Below, one piece after another: positions 34,400 to 60,800 of a DNA stretch of 64,000 bases. The stretch is taken from assembly GCF_021028975.2 (NCBI RefSeq), contig NC_059430.1, positions 109,058,001 to 109,122,000 of the forward strand. The letters run 5' to 3'. Position 1 is the first letter of the stretch; each line of letters begins with the position of its first letter. Source of the stretch: Sphaerodactylus townsendi (lineage: Eukaryota). The position numbers and the translations under genes were made by a program. The notes under the pieces were generated by a model that was not told the DNA's origin, did no database searches, and saw nothing but the letters and a program-made list of their open reading frames with translations.

Positions 34400-35850
34400 T
34401 TTAAGCAAAGGTTGCAAAGGGGTGGGGGCTTTTAAATAGTAAAATTTTGAGGGCCACAATGTGGGTTATTTTTCCTCCAACGCGCATGCGCCCAAAGCTG
34501 CCCCCCCCCGCCCCGCCCCGCCCCGCCCCGAGTTTGCGCCGCGGACCAAACTCCGGAGCACAAAAGCAGGCTAGAACAAGGGGAAGGGAGAAAAGAGGCG
34601 GGTATGAGTCCGACGAGAAAACTCCCAACCCCACAGGCGGCAAAAAGTGGGTTTACCTCGGGAAGGACAAACGGGCAGCCTCCAAACGAGAGCTCCTCCG
34701 CGTGAGGCAGACTTGGGTCAAGGCGGTTAAATCTCCACAGGCAAAACCGACTGCCGACCGTTGGACACGCCCCCTGCTCCAGCTGCACGTCTCGAGCAGC
34801 GGCGGTTGGAGGCGGGGAAACCAGACTAGCCTTCCAATGTTCGTGCCACGCCCACCCGCCCTGGTCATCAACTAAGGCGGTTGGAGGGGCGCGAGGCTCC
34901 TCCACTGTCAGCCCCTCCCCGTCCATCAGACCCAGCGAGCTGGGAGGGCGGCCAGAGTTCCCCCCACGACGCCGACGAACCTCCAGCTGGAGCAGCAGCG
35001 GCAGAAGCAGCCCCTGCCGAAGGACCCCCTCCTCCTTCTCCCCGCCGGCCGATTCCGCCACCGGTGCCGTTTTGGAAACGGCGGAGGGCATCCCCCTCAA
35101 GCCAATGAGGGGGGACCGTCCCCGGCGCCCCCTGCCCAACGGCCGCGCCTTTCGCCAGACACAGCGCGCCGATTGGGCCGGCGCCCTTCCTCCTTTTCCT
35201 CCTCCCGCTTGATTGGCCTGCGGGGCCCTAGAGGCAGAAGCGGCCGGCGGGAAGAAGGAGCAGGGGGTCCTTCGGCAGGGGCTGCTGCTGCCGCTGCTGT
35301 TCCCGCTGGAGGTTCGTCGTCGTCGCTGAGGGGACTCTGGCCGCCCTCTCTCCGCCCTCCCTCGTTGGGCCTGATGGACAGGGAGGGGCTGGCAGTGGAG
35401 GAGCACTCTGCTGGGAGGTCTGGAATGGGGGTGGGGGGGCGGTGCGCCCGTCGCTTGGAAGGGGGCAGGAGTTCCTGCTGCAGCAAAGCCCCCCCAAAAG
35501 ACCCCTTTCCCGCCCCCCCAGGCCACCCTGAGCCTGCCATCATTAGAAGTCCATTGCCTTTGCATCGATCGTTATAGCAATCGGTATATCGATCGATACA
35601 ACGATCGTTATAGCGATCGCTATAACGATCGATGCAAAGGCAATGGAAGCCTCGGGGTGCGGGGGGGGGGGGAAGGGGTCCCCTCTCCTGACCACTGTGG
35701 TTGATCAGGACAAGGGAGGGTCCCCAGCCAGGGCAGTTTGGGAGTGAAAAGCAGCGTCTTGTCCCTGAGTCCAGCCCCCCAAGCAGCAGCAGCAGCCACA
35801 GCCCTGTTCTGGAGGGGAGGAGTCTCAGCCGGGGCTTCTAGCAATCGTAG
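34400..35850 (-). promoter_or_regulatory. CpG island / promoter and non-coding first exon of CEP85
   Basis: Very GC-rich. Donor GAG|gtaaac at 34657/34656, NRF1-type palindrome GCGCATGCGC 34482-34491, CCAAT boxes at 35102, 35172 and 35212. Confidence 0.7.
35550..35647. repeat. CGATCG-rich palindrome
   Basis: Perfect 29-bp inverted arms 35550-35578 / 35619-35647 and an overlapping perfect 30-bp palindrome 35602-35631. Confidence 0.9.
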
Positions 35851-39301: not shown

Positions 39302-41843
39302 TCACCCAGCTTCCATGAAGAAGGAGACTTTCAGCAGTGCATCTGAGAAAAAAGAGCAGATGAAAGTCCTAGCAAGCTCCAGCAGATGCAGAGCCCCTCC
39401 CTGAGTGAGGGCCAAGCAAATAAAGCCAAATCAACTCAGAAAGGATCCAATGGCTAATACCCAGAAAGCTGATACAAGGTAGTGATTAAGAGGCTGGATC
39501 AGATGTCTGACCTCTGCAGTGAACTCTTAGCCCCCCTCCCCACCACTAAATGGAGATTATCCTGCCTTACAGGACTGTTAACATATACTAAGTACTCGAA
39601 ACATTCTAAATTGCTGTACAGTTTGCTATATAGTTATAGCAGCCTTAATAGCCCTGACCAGCCTGAAGTTGCCAGAGCTTAGAGGCTAAACAGGATTGGC
39701 CCTGGGTAGTACTTGAAATAGAAACTACCAAGGAACATCAGGGATGCTATGCTGAGGAAGACAATGGCAAAATAGTAATTGATCACAATAGGCAGGAGTC
39801 TTTCAATTTCTCTCTAATGCTCAGATTCTGGGGTCTCACACTGGCCTCCACACCCGTGAAGGCGAACTCCCCCTCATGGCTATGGTTACCTTCTACCACA
39901 GAGTGGCGGCTGTGCTGCAACACCTGCTCCCAGGCCGCTGGAAGAGTCTGCATCTTGGTCAAGTCTTCGTACTTGACCTGGAGGAGGAGCATCTTTACCT
40001 CCAGGTAGCTTTTCCAAGAGTTAAGGATGGCATAGAAGGAAGGGCCTAGGGAAGCTGGGACATAGGAAATATTGAACTCATGCCCTGTACAAATCAGAAC
40101 GGCAAACAGAGGAAGAGATGGGTGGAGCCATCAAGAAATGCTGAATCCTGCTACTGCTGAAGGGTAGGTTATTTTGAAAGCACTGCAAGCCTGCCCCCCT
40201 GCCCCAGCTTTCTCAACTTATGAAGGGTGAACAGTGGAGAAAGGGCACAACACATATATTGCATGCCGATGGCTCCAGTTTCAAACATCTCTGTAACAAG
40301 CCCAGGACCCTGGCATACTGCAGCCATTCAGAGCGGAAGATACTGGGTTAGAATCGCCATTTCAAACAGTTAAAGATATTCCAACTGGGAAGGGCTTGAG
40401 GGCCTGCAGCGCTCTCCAGCACTGCACATAATCTACAGTCTGTCAGCACAGGACAAATGTTGTTTCCTTTTCCCTCCGTTGTCTGGCTCCAGAAAACATC
40501 AGGGGCATAACTCTTCCAAAGGATGCATGCCATGATAAAACCCTTCCACATCCAGCAGCCACTCCAACATATCTGCCAATGACGGGCAAAGCACCGAGCG
40601 CTGGAAAGCCCTCTCCTGACACAGGTCTTCTTGCTGCTCATAGAGCTGGAAAATAGACGCCACGTGAACACCAACGGCATCCCGCACGTGTTGCAGCTCA
40701 AGTCTGTATACAAAACAGAGAACACATCATGAAAATGCAGCTATATAGAGCAACTCTGGACATCATAGGAAGTTCCTACAGATTTGTTCCCCAAATCTGT
40801 ATGTGCAAGCTCATTTGGAGATAAGGTGACTGCCACTTCCAGGGCAAGTCCAGCTGAATCTCTGTGGGTAATCCTTTCCTCAAGGACATTCCATGTCAGA
40901 ACATGGAAGCTAAGCAATGCTGGCTATGGTTAATATCTGGACAGGAAACCAGCAAGCAAGTCCAAGGTTGTTACACTGAATAAGGAAAAGGCAAGCTACT
41001 TCTGCTCCTCTCTTGCCTTGAAAAAACCCATGAGGGGTTGCCAGGGGTTAGATGCACCTTGGAAGGACTTTCCCCCACTACAATGAATTTGTGTTGATTC
41101 ACTGTGCTTCCCCACTTCCAGCAAATGGGACTCAGATTAACATTGTATGTCCAGCCTCAGTGATTTTGGACCGGAATGCCCTATGGATGGGGGCACCATG
41201 AGTCAGTTGTGCCTCAAAGGCACATTCTTCTTCAAGAAAAAATAGCACTTTTGAAATAACACAGTACATTGCAATGGGCTTGGATTGCTCATGTATGACA
41301 TACTAAACCCTTGTTCATAGGGTGGACCTTGCTCACTAAATTGCTGTGATGAGATTTCTAAGCATGCTGAGAACTGCTCTACAAAAATTAGTCAGATTTA
41401 TTTTAGTACTACCACAGTGATTTACACTGACAAAAGAAACAGCAACTACGTAGTTTATGATCATAGTAAAATTGGTGACTTTCAGTAGTCGCCTAATTCT
41501 TCTGATTAGCGTGCACAATTCCCCTCCTTGCACACCACATCACACCACACCACAGGTAGTCTTACAGTTTCCCCCATAGCTCCTCCAGCAAAGCTTCTGC
41601 TGCACATTGCTGGCGGCATCTGAGTCTCTCTGGTAGGCTTGAGAAGTCTCGCAGTGGGGTGTTGGCAAAGACCACTTTCTGGGATGCCTGCATCTGTTCT
41701 GCCAGATTGCTCAGCGAACCCAGAAGAGATGCACACGCAGCCAGGGCACTCTTCCAGGTCTCATGCTGTTCCTGGAGGGCACGAAAACACTTCTGCAGAG
41801 AACAGCGTAGGGGGTGAGGGAGAGAAGAGTCTTCTGAGGCCAT
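39302..41843 (-). CDS. AIRIM: AFG2-interacting ribosome maturation factor (C1orf109 orthologue), about 204 aa, 4 coding exons
   Basis: Exons 41566-41843 (MASEDSS..LQKCFRALQEQHETWKSAL..LLGSLSNLAEQMQA), 40527-40703 (..VRDAVGVHVASIFQLYEQ..PSLADMLEWLLDVE), 39890-40008 (YLEVK..QTLPAAWEQV) and 39302-39342 (DALLKVSFFMEAG*). Matches human C1orf109 motifs LSNLAEQ, PSVADMLEWL, LLNVSFFLEE. Intron 40009-40526 is U12-type GC-AG. Probable non-coding exon 1 donor at 43818/43817. Confidence 0.92.
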
Positions 41844-43729
41844 CCTAGGAGCAAACAAATGGAACTGAGCTGAAATGAGCCATGCTCAGGAAGCTCCATA
41901 GTCTCTGGTATTCTCAAACCCCATCCAAAGAGGCAACATGTTAGGTTGTTCTGCCCATCTCTCCCAGTTTACAGGTTCTTTGCCTCTAGCTCCTCCCTCA
42001 CCTAAAATTAGATAATGCAGCTGCCCTTCGTAGGGAACAGTTTATCCCATTTGTTTGATGCACTCCAGGCACATTTAGAGGGCTTGTACAGTGGAAGTTA
42101 TGACTAAGCTGCTGGTTATGATAGCAGAGGGAATGTGCAAGTTGAGTTTTTTTCTAGATTTAGGTTGATATTAACCCCATTTTCTTCTGCATTTTATTTC
42201 TGCTTCCACCAATTTCTATGAGGAACATTTCCACGCTGGACTTTGTTGCCTCCCTGGCTGGGAGTTCGTTTGTTTTTTTCAGAGATGGAATCCCTGACTG
42301 GCATATGCTGCCCATCAAATATTAGACAAATAGCACAAAGTGCTACACTTTTAAATCAAAATTATAAGTCTGATTTACAAGGCAGGCACAGAAAGGCATT
42401 TGGCAATCCAAGAAATCAACTGAAACTGACCATTGGAAGCCACAAGACAAAGCATGCATAGGCACTGTTTGCCTGTGGGGAAAAGTAAGCAGCCTTATAG
42501 AGCTGGTGTTTGGGCACCCACAAGGGGAAAGGCAGCATTGGAAGACATGGCAGCACAGCAGGCTCATTAAATTCTGCTTTACAGACAGAGGAAACTCATC
42601 TTGCTTGCACTGACAAACAGAAAACAGCACCAACTCATCTTTATGATTCTCCAAATTAACATATAAATTTAAATCAATTGCCTTAAGTAAAAACTAAGAA
42701 CCAAGAAGTGAGAAGGCAAAGGCTGGCACATGGGACTCTTCTGTGATTTTAACATGACACATAAACCTGACTTATTGCAAGTCAAACCCCTGGTACATCA
42801 AGGTCTTCACAGGAGAGTCTGATGATTATTCCAGTATATAATGTAATATACACATAACATATTTTCAGAGATGCATTAGTTGGTTAAATGTGACATCTTT
42901 TGTCCACAATTAATATATAAAATATTTTTATTGTTATGAAGTTTTATTCAATATCCAGATAGATTGCTAGTACTATTAAAACTGCATGAGACAGTTTGTC
43001 TACATAATGCATCTTCTGTTTACAAAAAGCAGCAGCCTGGCCAAGGTAACTGCTACAGCAACTCAGACAATTTCCTTGAACACCATGGACTCCTAGTGTG
43101 GAGAACACCGTGGTCAAGGTCTAGCATATTCTACCCCTTCTGCTCCCTGAATACCAACAATTCATTGTAGGGGACTGATTCAAGAGCACTTTAGTGGGGT
43201 TGCGGCATCGCCCAACTTGCCTGCATTAAAGGGCAGCTCTGCTCATCGCTGTTGCTGTAACGGCCTCTATATAAACAGATCGCTATCCTGCGGGAAACCC
43301 AGTACTAGCTGGGGCGGGGGCTGAGTGCTGCAATATTTGCTGCTAAGAGAGCCGGCGGATTCCTCTCCGTTCTGTGCCCATTGGCTGACGAAGTGCAACC
43401 CCAGGCAGGAAGTCATTGCAGGACGATGTCCACTTGGAGGGAATGAGGGGTGGGATGCAAGGGAAGGGAGGGAAGGGGACCCACCATCTGGACATGGCCC
43501 ACCCACCCTAGCAGGGGGAGGGGAGGGAAGGGTGGCGTGCAAGGGAGGGGAGGGAAGGGGACCCGGCATCTGGACATGGCCCACCCACCCTAGCAGGGGG
43601 AGGGAGGGGTGGCATTCAAGGGAGGGTTGCGCTTTTGTGCTGAACAGTGAAAATACCGGAGTCTTCAGCGGTGCATCAGATGCCGATCAGGAACGGAGGT
43701 CTCCAGTTAAAGGTTGAGTGAGTCATTCC

Positions 43730-44100
43730 TCCCAGCCCCGCCGCTGCAGGGACATGCAGCACGGGCGCGAAGAGGCGAATATCCCACGACTAGTCTGGAA
43801 AAACCCCTGAGTCTCACCTTAGGACCCCGCGAGGTCCAACATTCGTACACTACTTTCGGCGCCGCAGTCATGACACACTTCCGGAGAGACTAGAGAGAGG
43901 CTTAGGCCTAGAGCGCTCTCCCGCTGCCTCTTCTTGGCCGCCGAACGAGACACCGGCAAACCTAGACTTAATCCTTCCGCCGGGCAGCTCTCTTTTCAAA
44001 CTTTGGGAGGATGACACGCAGCCTGATGAAGAGTTCTGGCAAACCCGCCCCGTTTTGGGTTGTTTGGTTGAGGCAGCGACGGGGCTTCTATCATTTGCCC
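43730..44100 (-). promoter_or_regulatory. CpG-rich promoter / exon 1 of AIRIM
   Basis: CpG-rich. ETS/GABP motif CCGGAAGTG (43876-43884, - strand) and donor AAG|gtgaga at 43818. Confidence 0.6.
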
Positions 44101-45132
44101 CCCTCTCCCACCTTATTTCGTGTTGGTAATAAACATGATTCTGATCACTTGTCGCCATCAGGTGTTAGATTGTTTTTAGTACTGAAATTTAATTTATTAC
44201 GAATTGCTGAAGGCCGCCCTGAGCCCGTAAAGGGAAGGGCAGCATATACAACAAATAATAAATAATATAAACACATAGCATTACCGATAACTGGGCTGGG
44301 CGGCCCTCGGTATTCCTTGGAGGCCTCCTATGCAAATACTAGCCAGGGGTGAGACGGAGACAGTGTGACTATGATCATGATCAGTCAACAAGTTTCCATG
44401 GCAGAGTGGGGATTTCAACCAGAATTTACCAGATCCCAGTCCAACATCCCATTTGGCATCTCTGGAAGGTGCAGAGCTTCCTCCCACAGTTGTTGGCACC
44501 TGGTGGCCTCCTTAGTGGTAAAATGTCTGCTTTTCAAGTAACAGTAACGCATTGGTTGTATTGTGTTTATTATGAAATGTTGAAGGCCACCCTGAGCCCG
44601 TGAAGGGAAGGGCGGCATACACAACAAATAATAAATAATATAAACACATAGCATTGCCGATAACTGGGCTGTAGAAGGAAATAGTACGATATAGCCTGAT
44701 CTTGGAAGCCAAGCATGGTTGGTACTTGGATGGGATACCACTAAGGGGGAAGGCAGCAACATGAATCACCTCTGCTTCTCACTTGCCTTAAAAGCCCTTT
44801 ACTGGGGTCACCAACAGTCAGTGTCGACTTAAGGACACACATACATAACAAGTATGTGAATGGTGTCCTGATTTTTGGGTTCGGGACCACTGCTCCTGAC
44901 TCTTACACAGCACTGCACAGGCAGCTTGGCTGAGTGTACTTTGTGCCCACTGGGCATTTGCTTTGTGGACCAGCTTTTAGAAATACTCATTTAAGTCAGA
45001 GCCCCTCATCTATCTCTTGTGCTCATAACAAAGTGAAGAAGGAAGAAATGGTGATTACACTGAAGAGAACACTGGTGTTTTGAGAGACCAAGCTTGTAAG
45101 CCACTGAGGTACCTATGCAACTAATATGCCTT

Positions 45133-45431
45133 TATATTGTCAAAGGCTTTCACGGCTGGACTCAACTAGTTGTGGTGGGCTTTCCGGGCTGTGTGGCTGT
45201 GGTCTGGTAGATCTTGTTCCTAATGTTTCGCCTGTATCTGTGGCTGGCATCTTCAGAGGTATATTACAGAGAGAGGTCTGTTATACACTGTGTCCGGTAA
45301 CTGGACACAGTGTATAACAGACTTCTCTCTGTGATACCCCTCTGAAGATGCCAGCCACAGATACAGGCGAAACATTAGGAACAAGATCTACCAGACCACG
45401 GCCACATGGCCCGGAAAACCCACAACAACCG
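45133..45431 (-). mobile_element. Penelope-like (PLE) fold-back element with hammerhead motifs, second copy
   Basis: Same family in the opposite orientation; near-perfect palindrome centred at about 45298; imperfect flanking duplication AATATGC(C/T)TT. Confidence 0.75.
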
Positions 45432-45799
45432 AATATGCTTTTGCTTACTGTGACTTCCTCATAGGAGACAAAAAGAGTTGCCCCCTCCTTATAACTGGCA
45501 AACTAGATAGCTGCTGGTACAAACACACACAAAAGACCAGGAGCACCATAAAGACTCACTAATACTCATTGCAGGGTGAGCTTTCATGAGTCAGAGCTAT
45601 TTCCTCAGATACAGTGGGTAGAACAAAAATAATTTCCTTCATTTTTGCACAGAAAAGAACAGAAGGGGGAAAGAGAAAGGAATTAAGCAGAGAGGCCTGG
45701 TTTGTGAAACTGCAGGGTTTGATTTTTATCCCCCCCCCCCCCAAACACACACACACACACGCTTTAATATATCTGTGAAGTCACTGGGAGAGGTCCTTA

Positions 45800-46715
45800 G
45801 GAGGTTTGGTTTGCAGTGTGGATGACACCCAGCAAATTCCCGCCCTACCACTTCATTCTCAGAAAGCTGATGGTTTAAACCGGTGTTTGAAGTCTGTAAT
45901 GGGTTGGACAAAAGTAAACAAACTCAAACTTAATTCTGTTAAGGCAGAGGTGCTCTGGGTGGGGAGAAAAGCAGATCAGGGACTTCTGATCTCTCCCCTT
46001 GAAAAGCAGCTGGGAGTGCTCCAGTGGTTAGGATTGCTTTTGCCCAGCTCAAGTGGGTATGCTGCCTGCACTCATATCTGGCTATAATTACATTCATTTA
46101 TTTTGACATGTTTTAGTTACATCTAGACTGGCCTGTTGCAATGTGCTCTACTTGGAGCTACCCTTAAAAAGTGTTCAGAAGCTGCAGCTTGTGCAGAGTG
46201 CTATGGATAGACTGCTGGTTGGAGCCAGTAACCGGGATCATGTGACTCTAATACTATAGCGATTACATTGGCTTCTGATCTGTTCCCCGGACCAATTCAA
46301 AGTGTTGATTTTGACCTTTAAAGCCCTATATGACTTGGGACTGGGACAGCTGAAGGACCGTCTTCTTCCATAAGCTCTTACCTGGGAAATACAATCACAG
46401 GGAAAAGCCCTCTTGACAATTCCATTGACCAAAGAAGCTCATCTCATAGGTGCATGAAACAGGGCCTTTCGGTGGCAGCCTCATGATTATGGAACAAACT
46501 CCCCAGGGATCTTTAGAAGGCAGCTGAAGATGGTCTTATTTGTGACTGCATTTGATTAGTTTCAGCTCTTCTGCTTAATGGCGCTTTTCAATTGTTGATT
46601 TTAAATTGGTGGGTTTTATGTATTTTACTACGTTCTGTTGTTTGCACTGTAAACCACCTTGAGTTCCTGCAAAGTAGACAAGCAACTAATAGACATTTCA
46701 AACAAATAATAGATA
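45800..46715 (+). mobile_element. L2 LINE 3' fragment
   Basis: Degenerate DDTQ..NKLKLN..RL.CCNVLYL.LPLKSVQKLQLVQ..LHWL..QFKVLILTFKAL and L2-type tail. Confidence 0.75.
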
Positions 46716-46884
46716 AATTAGGTGCCATGCTATATGCTGGGGGATTGATCCACTTGAATAGCTTATGAATAATGAGAGGGGCCAGAAGTTCTTGTCGAAG
46801 CAGCGGCTTACACACGAGTAGGACACCTTGAAGGGTGCAATGCAAACAAGAACCGAAAGACACACAGTCACCATGCAGTTCTGT

Positions 46885-48219
46885 TTATTTGCTAACTACC
46901 ATCAAAGTGCGCCGCCAGACACAGGTGTTTCCGAGCTCCTTTATTAGGTTGGCTAGTGCTCTGAAGTTCATATGGCCAAACACACGATGGTAATAATGTA
47001 TGCATTGGTCATGAGGAGGAACATTTGATACTGACACATTTGCTACCTTCTCAGACATACAGACAGTACTCATACCACTGTGTTCTAAGTAATACAAGCC
47101 ATTTAACAGTTTCCCTTGCGCATACACAACACCATTCTTAGATATGGTACATGCTTGTTCAGCAAAAGTAACAACATACCCATCTGTCGTCATTTTAGCG
47201 ACGCTAAGCAAACAGTATTCAAACAGGGGCGCATAGAGGACGTTTTTAATATGTCCATGCAAAGCAGGTACGTAAGCTGTTCCTTGCTTCTCCACAGAGG
47301 CTGGAGTCCCGTTTGCCAAACACACATGTTTGATGTCTGCGGTACGTTGATCCTCTGTCAGCAAATGCTCACGGTTCACAATGTGCATAGAACAGGCAGA
47401 GTCAATGAGCCAAGTTCCATCTCTGTCCTTGTCGTTGCACGTGACCAAAAAAGCAGACGAAGAAGAGGCAGAGTCCCCTCTCCCAGGACCCTTCTTCTGT
47501 CTCTGTTTGGGCTTACGTCGGTCCAGCACTTTCACGCATGCTCTTGCCAGGTGGCCAGGAGCTCCACACCGGTAGCAACGCCTGGTCGCACAAACAGCAG
47601 GCAAGACGGACGAACTCTCAGGAGTTGGTTCCCTCTGAGGCTCGGCAACGCTCTTCTGGAATTCCCTCTGTCGCTCGCAATCCAGCAGCTTCGAGGTGAC
47701 GTAGTCCAGAGTTAAGACGGCATCCGCAACCGTCTGGAGGCTGCTGACCAACGACTCCCATGATTCGTCCAGCGACGAAATCAGCAGGTAGGCTTTATGT
47801 GAGTCCTCATAACGCAGCCCACGGTCAGCCAGCTCAGAAAATAAAGACCTCATTTTCTGTAGGTGCTCAGAGACGGAGTCACCTTTCCGTAGCCTGAGGT
47901 GATGCAACTGTCTTGTTAGTAAGACTTTCACTCCGACAGACTCACGCTGGTAGACGTCCCTGAGCAAGTTCCAGCATTCCGATGCAGACGCTGCGTCCTT
48001 GATATACAGCAGCTGGGAGCTCTCCACTGCCAGGATGATGGATGCTCTCGCCCGCTCCTCAGCTCTAATCTGAAAAGCGGAGGGCTGCGCGGGGAGTGGC
48101 GTCTCAACAAATGTCCACAAATCCTCACACAGAAGATAAGCTTTCATCTTCAAACACCAGGTCACATAGTTGTGCTCTGTCAGCCGCTCGAAAGGCAAGC
48201 CAGCAAAAGACGCAGCCAT
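46885..48219 (-). CDS. Copia Gag-protease polyprotein (truncated in the GAG-pre-integrase region), 444 aa
   Basis: Uninterrupted ORF: N-terminal LTEHNYVTWCLKMKAYL..DLW (copia gag), UBN2-type gag core, zinc knuckle CYRCGAPGHLARAC, protease WLIDSACSMH, pre-integrase NGLYYL..YHRVFGHMN. It reads into the LTR and stops inside AATAAA. Confidence 0.88.
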   Translation of the reverse strand: MAASFAGLPFERLTEHNYVTWCLKMKAYLLCEDLWTFVETPLPAQPSAFQIRAEERARASIILAVESSQLLYIKDAASASECWNLLRDVYQRESVGVKVLLTRQLHHLRLRKGDSVSEHLQKMRSLFSELADRGLRYEDSHKAYLLISSLDESWESLVSSLQTVADAVLTLDYVTSKLLDCERQREFQKSVAEPQREPTPESSSVLPAVCATRRCYRCGAPGHLARACVKVLDRRKPKQRQKKGPGRGDSASSSSAFLVTCNDKDRDGTWLIDSACSMHIVNREHLLTEDQRTADIKHVCLANGTPASVEKQGTAYVPALHGHIKNVLYAPLFEYCLLSVAKMTTDGYVVTFAEQACTISKNGVVYAQGKLLNGLYYLEHSGMSTVCMSEKVANVSVSNVPPHDQCIHYYHRVFGHMNFRALANLIKELGNTCVWRRTLMVVSK

Positions 48220-48468
48220 AGTGCAGCCGTAAACTGTTTCGCACACAGCAACAAAAACAGTTACTCGCGTGTAAGGGCAGAATCTGGGCCCATAACCTGT
48301 CGAAGCAGCGGCTTACACGCGAGTAGGACACCTTGAAGGGTGCAATGCAAACAAGAACCGAAAGACACACAGTCACCGTGCAGTTCTGTTTATTTGCTAA
48401 CTACCATCAAAGTGCTCCGCCAGACACAGGTGTTTCCGAGCTCTTTTCACTCAGTGGTCTGTGCCAAC

Positions 48469-48564
48469 TAATATACAAAACAGGTGCCAATCCGATGCCC
48501 ATGCCTTCTCAGTGTTTGCACACGTTACCCAGTTATGCACACAGCCCTGATATGCACACGGCAC
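48469..48564 (-). promoter_or_regulatory. LTR U3 promoter with three metal response elements, CCAAT and TATA
   Basis: TGCACAC at 48517-48523, 48536-48542 (TGCACACAGCCC) and 48553-48559 (TGCACACGGCAC); CCAAT 48487-48491; TATATTA 48475-48469 on the - strand. Confidence 0.6.
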
Positions 48565-50007
48565 TTGCAGGAGGGAGTGTCCACCTGTCATTTAGATCAT
48601 GTCCCATCTAAACACATGTTCTGACAGTTCTCTCACAATGTGGTAAAGATAAAAGTGCAATAAATTTAGATTACATAAACTAATTAGGGAGACAGTGTGA
48701 AGATTTAAACATTCCCATATCCTGGAAAAGTACATACCTTAAGAAGAGATTTAGTCAGATGAAAGTCTCTATCTGTGCTTAAAGGAGAAATGAGGCAAGG
48801 CTTTCGAATGCCAAGCCAGCTTCCAGCATGAAAATCTGCGATATCTCAAACTTCTGTACTTTCCAAAACTTGGTCTCCTGACCTAGATCCAAGTATGCAG
48901 TCCAGGATGAATACTGTGCAGCTGTTAGGCACATACAGTCAGGTGTGCTTGCTTTATCAATAATTTCTAAGAATCATCCTAGAACCTCATCACTGAAGGG
49001 CCAGTGTTTTATGCCAGATCAAATTTCAGCACAGTTTAGTCCAGGACAGCATCTCTTTCTACAAAATCCTTTTCTCATCTGCCCAGATCAGAGAGGTTTC
49101 ATCTGTGATTTCACAGGCAGGAAGTGAACCATGAGGACAGCAATGGAAATCTTGGGCATTAAGGAAACCAAGCAGGAAAGAGTAACCAATTATATCTGAG
49201 GCAGTAGGAGAGGCCAGGAGGATGGAGTAGAGTCCTGATTTGTCAGGGATTTTGGTTAAAGCAGTATCAGTGCAGTGAAGGGGATGAAAGTCAGTTTCTA
49301 AAGACCTGAGACGAAACAAAGAATAACCAATATGCCCTAAGATATTGTACAGGAAATGAACAGGGAGGATAGATTAAAGGATGGCTTTTAGAGAATTAAG
49401 GAAATGAGTGAACATGGGAAGGAAGGACCCAGAGGAGACAGTCAGGAGGATTGAAGGAAATATATGGAAGAGAGGGATGCGGGCAACAGGAGAGTCTGCT
49501 GACTGACTGAGAAGAGGGAACCACCTTAACTGTGGATTTCTGGCATTCAGCTCCAACCTGGTGAAGCTGATTAATAGCAAAGGGGGGGAAAGATCTGCAG
49601 GAGCAGCACATCACACCTCCTTTGATCCAGGGCTTTAACTCCTCTTCCCAGGGGGAGGTCACATGGCAGGAAGAATGCAGGCAGAGGCAACTTTTCACAC
49701 AGTTTCCGTTTTAATTACACTTGGCCAAGTGCAGCCTGTTACATGCTATGGGCCACGTCTGCTCAGCAGAGGTGGCTTAAAAACAGATTGGTCCCTAACT
49801 AAGGGGTATATTCCCAAATACATTTTTCAGTTCCTGGTATCCAGGTTGCCCTTGCTGTCTCCCCACCCCACCCCTGGGCCTTCCAATCCACATCCATGGC
49901 CAAGGACCAGAGCAAACATTTGTCCCTTTGCTCCTTCATAAACAAGTCCACTGACAGCAGTTTCCTGGAGAGCCACCAAACACTCAGTTGCACAAACAGG
50001 ATGAATT

Positions 50008-52635
50008 TTATAAACCAGATGACTCAGCTGTCAAACCATGCTTCTTTACCAGGACTTCAACAGTCTGGGTAAGTGCACTATGAAAAAATAGCAAGAGAGA
50101 GAGAAAGGAGTGAGAATAGAATAACCTGTTTCATGTCAGTATTCTTTCTTACTTTAAATATTTATTAGTGCCTCAAAATCTTTCCGACACCAGAAATGCA
50201 CACAAAGGACAAAAATAATCAAATTACAAAATACTTATTCTACAGAGACTTCCAGTTTCTTTTGTACCCAATATTAACTCTAAAAGCAATTTTAGAACTC
50301 ATTAAACCACCTAAATAAAATTAGATCTCTAGTCCCGTTACTGATAAAAGTCTCACTTTTATCTATTTTTTTACAATCCTTAACCTTCAAAACCACTAAC
50401 CATCAATTTATTTTTTCAGTTTTATCTAAATATTCTACCAATAGGGTTTCCAACTGTCAAAAAACTTAGTCCTGTGCTTTGAGTAACAAAGCTATCTCTG
50501 CCAACTCTAATACCTTCACCCATAATTCTTCAACTGTGGGAATAACTGGAATTTTCCATTTCTGTGTACATAATATATTCTTGCTGCTGCTGTCATATAT
50601 AAAAATAAAGTTCCATATTTTCTTTCCAGAGATCTATCCATAAGTGCCTTAAACCTTAGGTTTCATTTGTATATTTGGCTTTAAAATATTTTGAATTATG
50701 CTATGTATTGAGCTCCAAAATTCCTTAGCTTTTCCACAAGTCCACCATAAGTGACGAGAAGTTCCTTTTTGGTGTTTGCATGTCCAGCAATTATTTGAAA
50801 ATTTTTATACATCCTTGCCAGTTTGTCCAGTGCCATATGCCAATGTTACATCATTGTATAAATGACATAAGAGAGAGGAGTGAGTGAGAAGTGAATAATC
50901 TCAATTTTCAGTATTAGTTCTTAATGTAGACAGCACCAATATTGTGCTAAATTCTGATCTCTGGAAATCTGAACCCAGGTCTCCCAAGTCTAAGCCGATG
51001 AGCAGGTTAGAAAGGAGGATGCCACATGTGCCTCAGTTGAGCGAGCAAGCAAGAGCAAACACAGTGGTTTGTGAGCAGTCATTTCAGAGTGCTCACTTGG
51101 GCTCCCAATATTGCAGAAGGTTGCATAATCCCACCCGCTTTGATTGCAGTGCAAGGAGCCAGAAAGCAGTCTGAAAAGCCTCTAAAAAGCAAAACAGGAG
51201 AAAAAGTTGATACCAAAGAAGCAGCAAAGATCGATCAATCAATAAAGCACTGGGGAAAAGGACTGCATTTTTTTCCTTCAAAAGGCAAGTTCTGAGCATA
51301 CACTTTGGGAGGCCTTACCAGCCTGGACGAATAACCTTGAACTTGCCAGGGACAGAGAGGTCGACCACTGTGGAGCCCAGACGGCACTCTGGTCTCTGCA
51401 AGTCCCCAATCGGGCCTCCATCCACCACCAGTGCTAGATGAGGCCAAAGCTCTTTGAATTCCTGGAAGGAAGAGGGACAGAAGCATCTACACATTAAATG
51501 TACAGGTTGAGAATAAAGAAATGGCTAAGGGAACAGAAATATTAACTTTGAAAAGTACCCATCCAAAGGTACCAAATGACAGAAATAGTTTTATTGCAGT
51601 GAAATGGCTTTACTGTAAGTCTTAAAGGGAATGCTTGCCCCTCTCAGTGGCTCAACATGGGATGGAAGAGAGACCCATCCTGCACCTAGTGACACAACCT
51701 TTTTAGAAATTTTGAAGCCATGAGAAAAAGGCAAGATTCTCCCTATGGAAATGTACAGAAAAACTGAAATACATGCAATACTGACTTTACCAAACCTACC
51801 TTTACAATACTGCTTTAACGTAACACACATCACTTATTTCCAGCTCAACAAATATAACTGTGTTCCCAATTACTTGAGAGTAAATATGTTTTCCATAACT
51901 AAAATTATCACCAGTAAAGAGAGTGTCTGCACTGCATACAGATTCTAGTTTCTGCAGTCTAAGTGGTATGAAAAAATAGAAGCTGAAACCAGAAAAACCC
52001 AATTACTTAGAAAATGAAAAAGCTTAATATACAGAATTCTAGCCAAACTTAGGCCCCTTCCGCACACATAAAATGATGCGTTTTCAAACCTCTTTCACAA
52101 CTGTTTGCAAGTGGATTTTGCTATTCCGCACAGCTTCAAAGAGCACTGAAAGCAGTTTGAAAGTGCATTATTCTGCATGTGCGGAATGAGCCTCAGTCAC
52201 AGATAAACAATAAGTTTTGTAAATATGTTGTGTGTCTACAACACTTGGGAATTAATATTCTAGGATGTACATTTTGATACATATCTTTACCCTACACTTT
52301 ATGAGAAAATGCTTGCTTGTTCCAAAAGAAAAAAAGTGTTGGAGTGGTTTTTTGGGGGGTTAACTTCTGGAAACTCCCCCTCACTCTTCTCCGGGTCTTC
52401 TCTTTTCTCTTCACACTCTCAGTTCCTCCCTAGGACTTCAGAAGGCCCTTACCGTGACTGTCAGGCTGCTTTTCTGGGAGCTGATGTTTGCACTTGTTAA
52501 AGCCAAGGGGGTGGCACATACTCTGGCCAGCTCCTTGATGAACCAGTGATCAGGGACACGAACACCAACTAGCTGTGAGGGAAAAGGAAGGGGCAGTCAC
52601 AGTCAAGTCTACCAAAAGCATCTGCACATGATAAT

Positions 52636-52667
<32 letters not shown>

Positions 52668-53542
52668 GTCATTATCCCACCCTGCCAGGCAGTATAATTT
52701 GCTATTTCACCTACTAATCCCACATCAATTATTATTTGTCTCAGCCAGATCTGAAGGAGGACTCCTTCCAAAAGCAAACTCAGACTCACAGATGTGAAGG
52801 GGTTGAGGTCTGGGTTGAGAGCTTGGGAACGCTCTAGAACCAGCGTAACGGGCCCTGGCAGAAGATCATGAAGGAGCTGGTCAGGTACAGCCAGCTTACA
52901 GTACCTGCCAGGGAGGAAGAAAGAAGGGCTCAGAGAAAAAGGAATGCATTTAGGAACAGCAGCCTCCCAGAATTGCAACAGCCTCCAGCCTGGGGTCAGT
53001 TTATTTCCGGAGGCAAAGGCAGTTTTAGAAGTCGCACTCCAGGGAAGGTATCTCTGCTGAGGTCTTTCCCCAGGAGTTGGCAACCCCATCCGCGGGCCGC
53101 GCGTCCCCACCTGTGCACCTGGTCCACGTCGGCTAGGCAGATAGCCAGCGGCTTCGCGCCGTCGCGCCCCTTCAGCTGGTAGACTGCCCGCAGGGCGCGC
53201 GAGTCCTCCGCCAGGCAGGCGATGCCGTAGAGGGTGTCGGTGGGCACGGCCACCAGGCCCCCCTCGCGCAGAGCGGCGACGGCCGAAGACAAGGCGCGCT
53301 CTCGGCCTGGCGGGGACACAACAGGAGAGGGAGCCAGACAGCGCCGGTCGGACCCCGGACCCACCCGCCCGGGAGGAAGAGGGGAGCCCGCCTGCATGGC
53401 CCTCTCACTAACCTTGCGCGCTCGGCCCGACCAGCGGAAGGAGGGGAATGGCGGCTGCTGCAGAGCCGCTCCAGGCGGCCCCTTCACCGCTCACCGCACC
53501 TGCCAGCGCCCACACCGCCCGGCGCCTTACCCTGCCCAGCAT
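50008..53542 (-). CDS. YRDC: Threonylcarbamoyl-AMP synthase (YrdC/Sua5 family), about 257 aa, 6 exons
   Basis: Exons 53413-53542 (MLGRVRRRAVWALAG.., presequence-like), 53111-53306 (VAVPTDTLYGIACLA..LKGRDGAKPLAIC), 52790-52904 (DLLPGPVTLVLERS..LNPDLNPFTS), 52453-52572 (LVGVRVPDH..PLALTSANISSQ), 51319-51461 (LVVDGGPIGD..CRLGSTVVDLSVPGKFKVIRPG) and 50008-50077 (CALTQTVEVLVKKHGL..*). All GT-AG and in frame. Confidence 0.95.
50150..50860 (-). mobile_element. L1-clade LINE 3' fragment in YRDC last intron
   Basis: Degenerate CCHC-domain-like CW.C..KGTSRHLWWTCGKAKEFW; A-rich tail on the - strand. Confidence 0.6.
52052..52192. mobile_element. PIF/Harbinger-like MITE
   Basis: Imperfect long TIRs GGCCCCTTCCGCACA..ATGCGTTTTCAAAC / GTTTGAAAGTGCATT..TGTGCGGAATGAGCC; TWA-like flanks. 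Confidence 0.6.
52637..52663. repeat. (TG)n microsatellite
   Basis: About 13 TG units in YRDC intron 3. Confidence 0.9.
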
Positions 53543-53740
53543 GCGGAAGCCGCTTCCGGCGCAAACAACAGATACGCTTCCGGTAGAACCAACAATAGAC
53601 GCTAGCCTAGAGTGGTTCCTTGGCATGTTCCAAACCAGCGTAAAATGATTCCCCTCCCCCCCCCCGCCTTGGACGTCGGCCTAGACTCGGTCGATTCACC
53701 AAAACCCGCTTAGCTAGAAATAATTTCCCAACGCCGCCAG
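53543..53740 (-). promoter_or_regulatory. Compact YRDC promoter
   Basis: Two CCGGAAGCG ETS motifs (about 53551-53559 and 53576-53583) in a CpG island immediately downstream of the inferred MTF1 3' end. Confidence 0.55.
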
Positions 53741-56700
53741 GTTTAAATAAGCGTTTAATTAAGATTCCATTCGTATTAATATTGCTTTCAATTAAAAAAA
53801 TTAATTTTCACTTCCTTGCAGGTATTTCAAAGTACAGTATTAATGTTTCATACAAAATCGAGTAGTTGTTAAGCAAACACTGTTATTTCACATTGTACAT
53901 TCTTCAAAAATACAAATTCATGTTTACACCTCTGGGGGATTTGGGAGAGACTCTTCCTTTGGAAGTACTGTACCTGTAACTAACATCTTCACATCACTCA
54001 ATGCAAGGACATTTGTTCCCATGTTCAGAGTTAAATTAAGTTTGTTTAAACACAATACACACAACTCCTGAGAGAAGCTGACCTCAAACCATCTCCGGTT
54101 CTCAAGAGTGTCTGGAGATGCAGGCAGCAGGAGACTAAATTCTGGGCCTCTTTGTCAGGGAGGAAGCCAGAGATGTGCTCAGTTTGCAGGCCACCCACTT
54201 AAATCCAGGCTGTAATGGTACGACCAAAGTCCCTTTGCAAGTGAGTTATCTGATGAACTTTGGAAGTCCCCATTTTCCCCACTCTAGTGTGACAGCAACA
54301 AATGATTTTCTTCCCCAACTTTGCCCTCCATCTCACACTTCCATGAGGTGGGCATAACAACCAGTCATATCCCTGCTCAACAGAAACAGACAAATCCATG
54401 ACTGTTTTCCAAAGACAAAGCAGCCTCTTTCTCTTCTGGTGCGCCCCTAGCTATGCAAAAGGGGGAAAAAAATCAAAATCCTCTCTAAGGCACCACATCA
54501 GGCCTTAGCACCACTCTCCAAATTTTCTAGTTGGTGCTGGAGAGAACGGCAGTTCCTCTTTCACTGCATAAAGAGTTTCAGTATCTCAGCAGATGGGAAG
54601 AGACAACAGGGCAGAGCAAAGAAAGCAGCCATTTCAGTTAATAGACAGCCCCTTTCCTGGGGAAGACTGAAGGAGGGGAGCAGATAGCAAAACGGGGTGG
54701 GGGGGGGGGGGAAGAGTGGTAAATAGAAACTTGAAAGTGTCTCCTGCACAGAAACCTTTCCTTCTTTCTATTTTGGCCAGTGTGCATACCACTAAAATAG
54801 TTTTCACAAATGAGCACATGTTGACCCACATGCCCCACGTAACTATCCAGTTTCCTTGGCATTTCGCAGTGTGGAACCAACCCTAGAAAGAAAGCAGGAT
54901 GAGATGCAAAAGTTTAAAGGTTAGCCCTGTCCCCAACAAGAGAGGATACTTGTGAAAAATCTGGAAAGACCACTTGCAAAACTGGTTACAAAAAATACCC
55001 CCGCTGAACACCTGTGACCCAGAGAAAGGAGTATCTATTTCCTAGCCCAATTAACCCCAGTCACCAAGAGGGTCTTGTGGAGGGTTGCAAAGAGGAAGCC
55101 GTCAGTGAAGCGGCCGATATCTCCTCTACATCTGTCAAACCGAACTTCTTTCGTTGGGTTTCTTTCAGTCCTTTATGGATCATGTTTGTGAGAAAGCTTC
55201 AGAAGGGACTGCAAGCTCCTTGAAGGATTTTGCCACTTTGGATGGCGAATACCTCGCAGTGAAGTAATGCCGAAATAGGACACCCAGAAGAGCTAAAGGT
55301 GATACAAACCCAATGAAAGACAGACTTCTCCCTCTCCCGTGGTCCCTTCCTTTCTGGGAGGCCTTTAAAAGAGGAAGGCAGATGCATCAAGCCAGATTCT
55401 GTCATCTCAGCAGTGGCCAGAATCACCTCGGAAAACATGAGTGATCCCGATTGTGTACAGTCTGATTCTGCACCACCTTTTTTTTTTTTGCATAGACTGG
55501 TCATTTTTTAAAGAATGCATAAATTAGAAGGGGGTGAAGCACACGTCACTGAGCTGGTTCCTACACCAATTCCATACAGACACATACACCCCCAGACTGC
55601 ATGTAGATGCTGCTTCTAGATACACGTATTGCACTGAGGTTAAGTGCTCTTCTTTTTGCACAACCACATTAATTTTTAGTCAGACCAAAAAAAAAAAGAG
55701 GGGAAAAACTTTCTGAAAAACACTTATAAATGAAAATTGCAGCAGTCTTAAAGAGAACTAAAGTGCATTATATAGCCCAGCATGTTTGTGTAAATGGAGC
55801 AGCCCTAGCAAAGTAACTTTTCTTCTCTAGATTCCCATTAGCAGCCTTTAGCAAATGCAGCAGATTCCAGACATTCCCTTCCGTCCCCGAGCATGATGTT
55901 CTTCCTGCCCGGGATCCTTAGCACAACCAAATCACCCTGCCCAGCAGAGAAGCAAGATTAGTCGGGCCCTAAATGTAGGAGCAGCATCCATGCTCATTAG
56001 CACCTCCTCAACAGCCATTCCAAACAGACAAACCTACCAAAGGTGGTGTCCTGGTGCAAATCCCAATCCTTTGGAAGTCCAGAATGGGGGCCTCTCCATC
56101 TCCAACCAAGGAACTCCCCCACCCCAGCTATACTCCCATTCATGGGAAGGAGATGGCCATTGTCAAAAGGTTACGGTTTGAGTTCAATTTAATAATAAGC
56201 TCAAAGGAGTCGAAAAGAGAGAATATCCAAAAAAGGAATTCCCCTGACAGCTGCTCTGCTCCCCAGAGCCTGTGTGTGAATGTCTGCTGCTCCAAGCCTC
56301 TGACTAATTGCTGAAGTGGCCTGCTTTAGTGGTATGTGCTGCGTGTCGTACCACGGGGGCAACTGAAAGGTGAACCAAATCCTGCTGCAGTCAGAGGACC
56401 AGACAGGCCCCTCGAAAAACCAACAGCAGATTGCAAGAAGGCCAGACAAGACACCTCCTCCTGTGCACTGTGCTGCTTGGGACTCCAAGCCAACCACTGC
56501 AGCCCAACAATCTCCAGGCCCAAGACTGTCCTCTCTGCTCTCTACCATGCTCGAACTGAGACTGTTAGGCAGCACCTCCAGACAGCCCTGCACAATTCAG
56601 GCTATCCCTCTTTACGGAGCAAGAATCCACTGTTCCCATGTAGACAACCTTTCCCCCTTCCCAAGGATGGCCCAGACCTACCAAAATGCTTCAGCCCCTT

Positions 56701-57889
56701 ATTAGCTGGCTCTAATGCTTTCTGAACACCCCTCCCTGGGGTGCTAGGCTGGGAGTTACTGGCCTCATCGTTCCTACACCAGGGGAAATTCCAGAGAAGG
56801 AAGTCCCAAGTCTGCCCCCAGCAGCCCATTTCATTTATTCCCTGGTATGTAAGAAGTTTCCTGATAGCTCCCTGCCATGAGACAAACTATTCTGCATACA
56901 AAATACAGAAAGGACAGGTCAGAAATTCAGACATGTGGGCAGAACCCTCAAAGCAGTACGGTTAGAAAAGAGGATGCTTCCCAAAACACTACAGGCATTA
57001 GTGTGAAGGGAGTCTGTGTTACACTTTTACCCTGAGTAAGTTAGAAGGAGGCTGTAATTTGCGCAGCAGCAGGCAGAGGGCAGAATTGGGCAGGAATGGA
57101 ACTGCTTGACAGCCAAGAGGAAGAATCTGGGAAGCAAACCATGAGTACTCCTTGCAAGGGAAGGAGCTGTTCTGGAGAGACTTTTGCTAAGCTCCTATTG
57201 CTGTGTCTGCTACATCGCAAAGCGGCAGTGCTGGGCAAGTGGTTCTGGTAAAGCTGAAACAGTGCAAATGAGCCACCGACATCTCTGTAAACACCCAGGC
57301 CGCTGCTCCTGAGAGTGGTATTCAGCTACCAAGTAGGACAGAAAGAGAGAGAGAAAGTCTGACAACTTGGCTGCCTCTACAGAGCAAGAGCATTTTACTC
57401 CAGTGCAAACTCTGAGATGTGCCTCGCTTAGACTTCCAGAGCTTCCAAGCAGCGGGGAAACCCTCCCTTGGGGAAGGCGCGCAAACTCTCTTCCTCCCTG
57501 GCCCTGAAGTTGGTGGCACCATCTTGAAAAGTGCAGTTGCCTCTCCAATGGGAGCCCGGCTCACCGTCCCTCTCCCCACCTCATAATAGTGCACACTCTA
57601 GTGCAGACTGTAACAAGGACTTCAACATGCTGCCCACACCATTTCCTAACCTCCACCAAGCTATGTGCAAGCAGGCAGCAGCTGGCCCCTACAGCCCCCT
57701 CCACGTGACTCTGATTCCCCCATTCATTCACAAGAAGTTGAAAGGGGAGAGACGAAAGAGAGCGGCCCAGTAGTTCAGGCGCATCTTTGCCTTTCCTCTC
57801 CGGACAAGCCGCTTCTCCTAAGGACAGGATTCCAGGGCCAGGGAGCACAGCAGGCTCTTGTTGAACCTTCCCTCGGGAGCAGGAGGGCA

Positions 57890-60800
57890 TCACTTGGGGA
57901 AGCTGCTGCCAAGCTCTTCATCCCTCTGCAGCAGGGCTTCAATGGGGCTGAGTGGAGAGGGGGCCTCGCGGTTCTGTAGGGAAAGGAAGTCGGAAACGTC
58001 CATGGCACTTAGGGATTGGGTCTGCGTATCTGACGGTTTCCCCGCCAGAGCGCTCTGCTCGCAGGAAGGAGGCAACGTGGAAGAGAGGGCAGCAGTGGAG
58101 GAGGCCGCAGCAATGGCAACAGGGAAGGACTGAGGTTGAAGCCCTGGTGGAGGAGGTTCCCCTGGGGGTTTGGAGTCAGATGTGGAACAGCTCTTCCCGC
58201 TGCTGGCTTTTTCTTTGACCAAGTCCCGGCAGGCACACTGGCACTGACAGGCTTCCTCTTGCTTGATGATGATCACGGGTAAGCTTAGGCCAATTTGCTG
58301 CACGGAGCTCCCTGAAGATAAAACACAGACATGTCAATCCAGGTTGTTTCTAGTCCTCAGAGTCATGGATGCAAAGATGTGGCTGCAGCGTTTTGGATAG
58401 TAAAAGGTAAAGTTTCCCCTTCAGTCGGATCCAACCCTGGGTTACCACTGCAAGCAGATTTTATAGGCAAGCCATTTTTGTGGGGTAGTTTGCCATTGCT
58501 TTCCCTGGCTATTCTTTACCCCTTAGCTATGAGCTAGGTACTCATTTACCGACCAAGGAATGGCTGGCTGGCTGAGTTGACCATGAGCCAGCTGCCAGGA
58601 TATCTGACCCACAGGGGGCTCGAACTCCTGACCGTGTGAGTGGCAGTGCAAACCTTTAACCACTATGCCACGCAGCTCTTGTTTTGGACAGACTCAGTAG
58701 CAAAGAAGCTTCTAGCAGCATGGCAAGGGTGGGCAACTTCCAACAACTGTTGCTGCTACCCACCTGTACAAACAGGACATGTACCACCCCCCCCCCCTCA
58801 GTATGCCTGATGGCACAGAGAGAGCCAGGATTCTGCTGGAGCAGAACACAGCCCTGGGAGTGTATGACTGATCAGGAAGCAGCAAGAGGCAGATAGCCAA
58901 GTACTACAGCACGGGTGCAGTGATTTGAATGTCAGACCAGAATCCAGATGACCCAAATTGGAATCCCCATGCTGCCTGCTGGGTGGACTTTGGGCCAGCC
59001 ACATACACATGCAGCCTGATACCTCACAGGGTGATTGTGATGACGGAATGGAAGACAGAAAAACAGCAGAAGATCTTTCGGTCCCCACTGGAAACAAAAG
59101 TGTGGCATAAATGAAGCATACAGATTACACTGGACCCAGGGCATTAATGCTCGAAAACAAACTAAGACAGCTGCAAAGAGATGCTTTCTTTCAACTTCAT
59201 TCGGCCCTCTACCTTGACTTGGCAGATCTGCCCACCTGCATCCATGCCACATTGGTACTAGACTATTGTAATGCACTCTACCTGTGTCTGCCCTTGAAAT
59301 CAACTCAGAGACTGCAGTTGGTACAGAATGCTCACAATCGACCATTATGAGGAGCTAGGTGGAGTATGCCCATTACTCCCATTCAGAACTCACTTCACCG
59401 GCTGCCCATCAGTTACTGCGTTCAATTTTAGATACTGCCTGTCACGTGGAAAGCCCCTCATAGCCTTGGACCCTCACATCTTCATGACCACTTCTCCTTT
59501 ATGCCACTACAACAGCTTCAATCATCTAATTAGGGCCTTCAACAAGTGCAACCAGGCAACTGGACAAGTTCAGCAACCGCCTGGGCATGTGCAGTCTCTG
59601 TTGTGGCCTTGTGCAATGGCCTGTCTGAGGAGGCACCCACTCTTCTGGCGTTCTGCAAACTACACAAAACAATTATTCAGGAGGACATTTTAATACAGAA
59701 AATAAGGCAAATAAGGTGATGGATTGCACCTGATCTCACTGAAAAAGGAGATTCCTGACGTGGTGATTAGCGGGACACCAGAAGAAAAACAATGGGATGC
59801 AATCCTCCCAAACAAGTCCTTTCCTTCCTCATGCCAGCCTCAGTGTGAGAACAGGCTGATTTGATGAGACCATCCCCTTTGGCGGAGGTGAAAAGTGCTA
59901 TCAAGTCACAGTTGACTCATGGTGATCCTATAGCAGTGGTGGCGAACCTTTGGCACTCCAGATGTTATGGACTACAATTCCCATCAGCCCCTGCCAGCAT
60001 GGCCACTTGGGCATGCTGGCAGGGGCTGATGGGAATTGTAGTCCATAACATCTGGAGTGCCAAAGGTTCGCCACCACGGTCCTATAGGGTCGTGGTGGTG
60101 AACCTATGGCACTCCAGATGTTCATGGACTACAATTCCCATCAGCCCCTGATGGGAATTGTAGTCCATGAACATCTGGAGTGCCATGTAGTCCATGAACT
60201 GATGGGAATTGTAGTCCATGAACATCTGGAGTGCCATAGGTTCACCACCACTGCTATAGGGTTTTCCAGGCAACATTCAGCGGTGACTTGCCATGTCTCT
60301 GGCTTGCCATGTCTCTGGATTTCCTTGCTGGTTTTCCAACCAGGTACTAGCCAAGGGGACCCTGCTTAGCTTCCAAGATCTGCTGAGATCAGGCTAGCCT
60401 GGGCCATCCAGGTCAGGGCGCATCCCCTTTTGCATGCTTTTTTTCAGTGTCAGGAAGCATGAATAAAGCACAGGACTCAAGCATCTTAATGCTACTTACC
60501 TGCATTACCAGCAACAGGCAAGGTAGTAGTAAAGAAGACATTCTCCACCACCGGGGCCTGCGACTTTTAAAGAAGAGAAAAGATACATTTCAGTGACTGA
60601 GCCATCTGGTCAGCAAGAATGCAGAAAAGACCCCAGGAAGTGGAGTCAGGCATGATCCTCCCACACTGGCCATGAGCCTTGAGGTCCCCAACAGGGAAAT
60701 ACAAGGGTGGACTGTTCCCCCTCCCTCAGCATATTCTCTGCTGGAACACCGAGTTGATATGCACCATTTGCTCCTGATTTTGGGGCATCCTGCTGGCACC

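Follow-up and report, generated by a model that had tools for sequence, protein, structure and literature searches.

Stress-responsive promoters of copia retrotransposons are known from plants, where the LTR of ONSEN carries heat-shock elements and that of Tnt1 carries tandem boxes in its U3 region. More generally, the use of host stress factors by LTR promoters is well known in plants and flies. Here, we describe a Ty1/copia element in a 64-kb window (the whole stretch of DNA that was analysed) whose U3 region carries three candidate binding sites for the metal-responsive factor MTF-1, known as metal response elements (MREs). As in ONSEN and Tnt1, a Ty1/copia U3 holds repeated candidate sites for a host stress factor, an arrangement that, if the prediction is true, would tie transposition to stress. 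In contrast to these plant elements, the host is a vertebrate, the candidate factor is MTF-1, and the stress response is a prediction from sequence.

Target genes of MTF-1 often have multiple MRE copies in their enhancer-promoter region (PMC4879176). The U3 resembles metallothionein-type promoters in having, within about 120 nt upstream of a TATA box, several TGCRCNC cores, of which at least one has the extended flank. Unlike in those promoters, however, the copia sites all point the same way and go back to a single duplicated unit, and these predicted sites stand in a retrotransposon LTR and in no host gene. Predicted MREs inside transposable elements have a precedent in Drosophila: the MTF-1 motif is 1.4-fold enriched in transposable elements (PMC6649756), and the F-element insertion FBti0019170 in kuzbanian adds a predicted MTF-1 site near a zinc-related gene (PMC5316978). 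Those are mostly single in-silico sites in insects, whereas the copia U3 holds a proximal promoter cluster. A search of the literature found no published case of a vertebrate LTR with a proximal MRE cluster.

If the prediction holds for the family of this element, no retrotransposon switched by metal or oxidative stress would have been described in a vertebrate before it. Bursts of transposition in the vertebrate germline or soma would then be linked to oxidative stress and to the metal load of the environment, and the family would be a natural source of new MTF-1-responsive enhancers. The principle itself would not be new; what would be new are the factor and the host. As it stands, the case is one defective copy with a well-formed promoter prediction that is partly supported.

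Table 1. Positions of the copia element, its parts and neighbouring features in the window
Feature	Position	Strand	Remarks
AIRIM exon	41562-41858	-	PDB 9gwj_A match, 5.9e-16
AIRIM-side CpG island	43601-44000		
Target-site duplication GTTCT	46788..46792	.	Downstream side of element; same 5 bases at 48627-48631
Partial 3' LTR (R-U5 without U3, AATAAA kept)	46793..46938	-	143/146 bases identical to 48298-48443
444-aa open frame	46885..48219	-	Copia-type gag, CCHC knuckle, protease-region beta-barrel, integrase start (Pfam)
Leader arm of perfect 14-bp stem	48262..48275	-	Reverse complement of 48312-48325; paired in minimum-energy fold
Primer-binding site GGTTATGGGCCCAG	48284..48297	-	Adjoins LTR end; identical 14-mer in L002:328 and L005:32
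Complete 5' LTR, 329 bp	48298..48626	-	Repeat boundary, TGTC...GACA termini, flanking duplication
U5 arm of 14-bp stem	48312..48325	-	Pairs with 48262-48275
AATAAA, putative polyadenylation signal, then GT-rich stretch	48389..48394	-	Read directly; function by inference
Predicted transcription start, U3/R border	48443	-	32 nt downstream of first T of TATATTA
TATA box TATATTA	48469..48475	-	Read from sequence
CCAAT	48487..48491	+	Within ATTGGCA on transcribed strand
Site 1	48515..48528 (core 48517-48523)	+	About -74 to -80 from predicted start; 2 mismatches to 14-base motif
Site 2	48534..48547 (core 48536-48542)	+	About -93 to -99; 1 mismatch to TGCRCNCGGCCC
Site 3	48551..48564 (core 48553-48559)	+	About -110 to -116; 13/14 to extended motif, best match in window
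Target-site duplication GTTCT	48627..48631	.	Upstream side of element
YRDC exon 1	~53090-53400	-	Pfam Sua5_yciO_yrdC, 2.4e-16; inside CpG island 53001-53800
MTF1 exon	near 58249	-	Encodes CQCQCAC cysteine cluster

Candidate MTF-1 sites in the U3 region

All three sites have the core TGCACAC and lie inside the U3 of a 329-bp LTR that is transcribed on the - strand (Table 1). An earlier note on this DNA had described three same-strand TGCACAC cores within 43 bp, quoted a flanking string for each and placed a TATATTA downstream of them on the - strand, all of which we find as described. It had also placed a CCAAT on the transcribed strand; its position is right but its orientation is not, as CCAAT reads on the + strand and the transcribed strand therefore carries an inverted CCAAT (ATTGG). 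Along the - strand, the promoter thus runs from the repeated sites through the inverted CCAAT and the TATA box to the predicted start, with spacings like those in metallothionein promoters. Such a layout is typical of a proximal promoter that depends on MTF-1.

Sites were scored by mismatch counts to consensus strings, and the 14-base extended MTF-1 motif was taken from the earlier note. The three best matches to this motif in the 64-kb window are precisely these sites, whose mismatches number 1 (site 3), 2 (site 1) and 3. The string TGCRCNCGGCCC is matched with one mismatch at three places in the window, two of which are among the three sites. The flank of site 1, GTTAC, is not GC-rich. Sites 1 and 3 contain one CpG each; both are intact. 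A fourth, weaker MRE-like string with 3 mismatches is found in the part of the leader that separates gag from the primer-binding site (48238-48251, + strand); its core reads CGCACAC and lacks the first T.

How unusual is such a cluster? The core TGCRCNC occurs 53 times on both strands of the 64 kb, or about 0.83 times per kb, in agreement with the chance rate of roughly once per kb proposed earlier; shuffles gave 43 +/- 8. Nowhere else in the window do three cores fall within 43 bp on one strand, and only one of 2000 dinucleotide-preserving shuffles produced such a triple. Counting any exact heptamer that occurs three times within 43 bp, we find only three places in the 64 kb, the U3 cluster among them; the remaining two consist of low-complexity sequence, simple runs rich in A and T or in purines. 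The earlier note's argument from chance, that three cores in 43 bp are unlikely, is weakened by the origin of the sites in tandem duplication.

Sites 1 and 2 are separated by a spacer with the end CCCAGTTA, sites 2 and 3 by one with the end CCCTGATA, and the two are related, which implies that the triple arose by tandem duplication of one unit and not by three independent events. Arithmetic of the kind "three by chance" therefore overstates the case. Judged by its spacers, the array is made of about 2.5 diverged tandem copies of a 17-19-bp unit with one perfect MRE core each. Tandem Repeats Finder scored no repeat on the LTR, because the array is too short and too diverged, and the duplication was seen by eye from the shared spacers. 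A microsatellite or low-complexity origin of the array was considered and rejected, since the spacers are complex sequence. Since the duplication, no difference has arisen among the three 7-base cores, whereas the spacers have come to differ at 2 of 8 bases and, in length, by 2 bases; this contrast is a weak internal sign that the core is the constrained part.

The same duplication invites a plainer account, in which the array is an ordinary U3 enhancer unit, tandemly duplicated and bound by some other factor or by no factor at all, the heptamer was copied twice and its resemblance to an MRE is coincidental. The related spacers fit this account, and so does a core that by itself turns up about 0.8 times per kb. 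Site 1 is overlapped by a forkhead-like TGTTTGC and has ACGTG within its reverse complement, and the cluster is found in none of the five related copia LTR regions discussed below. However, the agreement of site 3 with the extended motif at 13 of 14 bases, flank included, and of site 2 with the classical consensus at 11 of 12 bases reaches beyond the 7-base core, and the cores have stayed identical while the spacers diverged. We regard coincidental resemblance as quite possible, though short of probable.

In the reading that we prefer, zinc-loaded MTF-1 would bind the three U3 sites under metal or oxidative stress, site 3 best, and the bound factor would raise LTR transcription from near 48443 towards gag. 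Binding of MTF-1 to site 3 in vitro is likely, judging from its motif. Metal induction of the copia LTR by MTF-1 is a more tentative proposal, which we place a little below an even chance. It is partly supported by how rare the cluster is, how well the sites match the extended motif, the spacing at -74 to -116, the identical cores and the youth of the element; against it count the chance that a single fortuitous core was duplicated, the flank of site 1, the CpGs in sites 1 and 3 and the five distant relatives, described below, that have 0-1 cores. Only 32-38% of MTF1 ChIP peaks hold the consensus site (bioRxiv 10.1101/534271), so that the presence of a motif predicts occupancy poorly. What the DNA shows directly is the sites and their positions, the anatomy of the LTR and the rarity of the cluster; MTF-1 binding, inducibility and the standing of the cluster as a family trait, as opposed to a feature of this single copy, are what we infer.

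A recently inserted, internally deleted copia element

The element at 46793-48626 is a recently inserted, internally deleted Ty1/copia copy. That the LTR belongs to the Ty1/copia group, as first proposed in the earlier note, is borne out by the copia-type gag with its CCHC knuckle, the TG...CA ends, the 5-bp target duplication and the primer-binding site. The 444-aa open frame continues into the R sequence and stops there. In Pfam it matches Retrotran_gag_2 (copia-type gag, E 3.9e-29), Pol_BBD (Pol beta-barrel domain, E 2.3e-12), DUF4219 (E 3.8e-07) and zf-CCHC (the CCHC knuckle, E 2e-05), all above the curated cut-off, and gag_pre-integrs (pre-integrase domain, E 6e-04) below it. The protease-region barrel is followed by the pre-integrase domain, after which the frame is cut off with no reverse transcriptase left; in relatives at 36% identity, the order is rve and then RVT_2. 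Missing from the element are most of the integrase, the reverse transcriptase, the polypurine tract and the U3 of the 3' LTR.

Drosophila copia is primed by an internal part of the initiator tRNA-Met. Similarly, the primer-binding site that adjoins the LTR here presumably pairs with the anticodon arm of initiator tRNA-Met and not with the 3' end of the tRNA. No tRNA gene was found in the 64-kb window. The same 14-mer stands upstream of gag in two contigs of relatives, L002 (328-341) and L005 (32-45), at a protein identity of only 34-36%. In the predicted fold, the perfect 14-bp stem between U5 and the leader encloses the primer-binding site.

At the other end of the LTR, the 5' end of U3 (48595-48621, - strand) contains two 9/10 matches, 7 nt apart, to RRRCATGYYY, which is the pattern of a p53 half-site. 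Both lie within a palindromic stretch (TTTAGAT/ATCTAAA, TGTCA/TGACA).

The AATAAA and the GT-rich run after it would place the R/U5 border near 48370 and make R roughly 70 nt long. The fragment of the 3' LTR begins at the base equivalent to 48443, and this edge lends modest independent support to a U3/R border, and with it a presumed start site, at that position. At the junction itself (46930-46950), R-U5 joins the start of the integrase, and the joint coincides to the base with the predicted start site and has a brief AAA(G) overlap; such a junction would fit an aberrant first-strand transfer in reverse transcription, or a later deletion whose end coincides with the start site. Because the 3' LTR has no U3, this copy cannot pass on its promoter. 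It is a dead end, as its RNA would carry no U3.

The two LTR parts differ at 3 of 146 bases, two of these differences being CpG to CpA changes in the 3' fragment, and the 5' LTR has lost no CpG in the 146 comparable bases. For CpG, the element has an observed/expected ratio of 0.57-0.86, compared with 0.1-0.2 for 2 kb of flank on each side and 0.29 for the window as a whole. The few LTR differences together with the high ratio relative to the flanks indicate that the insertion is recent, and the strong depletion in the window suggests that the host genome probably methylates its DNA heavily.

Could methylation make the sites irrelevant in the animal? They might bind MTF-1 in vitro while the LTR is methylated and silent, with no effect on the element or its neighbours. 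Sites 1 and 3 hold two of the three CpGs of U3, in a window with a ratio of 0.29, and the 3' LTR fragment already has two CpGs fewer. Yet the element retains its high ratio and the 5' LTR its CpGs, which in turn could simply reflect youth. We consider a silent LTR improbable, and keep induction by MTF-1 as the working proposal for the promoter.

Relatives of the element

Does the cluster belong to a family? A broader version of our proposal holds that MTF-1 is the chief activator of the promoters of a whole squamate Ty1/copia family, whose solo LTRs would scatter metal-response cassettes near host genes; we regard this as somewhat unlikely. The earlier note had likewise proposed a metal- or oxidative-stress-inducible family that may spread such cassettes, which the searches described here do not support. 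A self-search of the 64-kb window found no second family copy and matched just the two LTR parts of the element to each other. A word-indexed protein search with a 453-aa frame returned no scored match, as it was probably swamped by low-complexity candidates, and with a 140-aa gag query one protein of the gecko Sphaerodactylus townsendi was retrieved, at 53% identity. A full HMMER scan of 1.84 billion representative proteins gave one close relative, an 85%-identical fragment of 121 aa from S. townsendi, and the other matches are at or below 37% identity, except for one that is confined to the repeated zinc knuckle. The host is accordingly a squamate-like vertebrate, and nothing in the DNA looked human. 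When the window protein and the 121-aa S. townsendi fragment were looked up by exact match, no contig was found. Neither searches of metagenome contigs with LTR patterns nor pattern and protein scans of viral contigs found further family copies.

Five contigs hold distant copia relatives (34-37% identity). They have 0-1 cores outside their open frames, the region upstream of gag included, and no MRE cluster was found in any of the five. From this it follows that the cluster is no general trait of the related copia lineages. In the two relatives compared, L001 and L002, no similarity to the LTR at 48298-48626 was found. The ends of contig L001 (1-141 and 4487-4627) are identical over 141 bases, which is the k-mer size of the assembler (k141 in the contig name); its LTR has been collapsed, and LTR boundaries in such metagenome contigs are therefore untrustworthy.

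Neighbouring genes

MTF1, YRDC, the copia element and AIRIM all lie on the - strand. The element stands between the 3' end of YRDC and the promoter of AIRIM and is transcribed towards AIRIM, which is 2.8 kb downstream of its 3' end. The three genes were identified by reference, from exons searched singly. Both statements of the earlier note about this neighbourhood agree with our mapping: it had put the AIRIM and YRDC promoters about 4.5-5 kb from the LTR, and CpG islands lie some 4.6-5 kb away on either side; it had also named the MTF1 gene as a neighbour, and the exon near 58249 encodes the CQCQCAC cysteine cluster that has been described for MTF1 (bioRxiv 10.1101/534271).

This setting raises the idea that the LTR now serves the host, either as an alternative promoter or as a metal-responsive enhancer of AIRIM, YRDC or MTF1. 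The shared - strand of the three genes and the element and the CpG islands at 43601-44000 and 53001-53800 are in its favour. Nonetheless, the insertion is young and the polyadenylation signal of the R-U5 fragment stands between the LTR and AIRIM, so we judge a host function to be very unlikely.

Several further features of the region were observed. Within 41500-58300, nothing but the copia element lies between YRDC and AIRIM; in human, the order presumably has CDCA8, EPHA10 and MANEAL between the genes MTF1, YRDC and AIRIM. A 377-aa ATG-started open frame with no Pfam or PDB match lies inside a CpG island (34432-35565, - strand); it could be a first exon, or a frame that is open by chance because the DNA is GC-rich. 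Adjoining the AIRIM CpG island are two tandem copies, 90% identical, of an 82-bp G-rich unit (43439-43602). Upstream of the same island, a 106-bp direct repeat (44193-44298 and 44566-44671; 92% identical, 373 bp apart) is probably an interspersed repeat.
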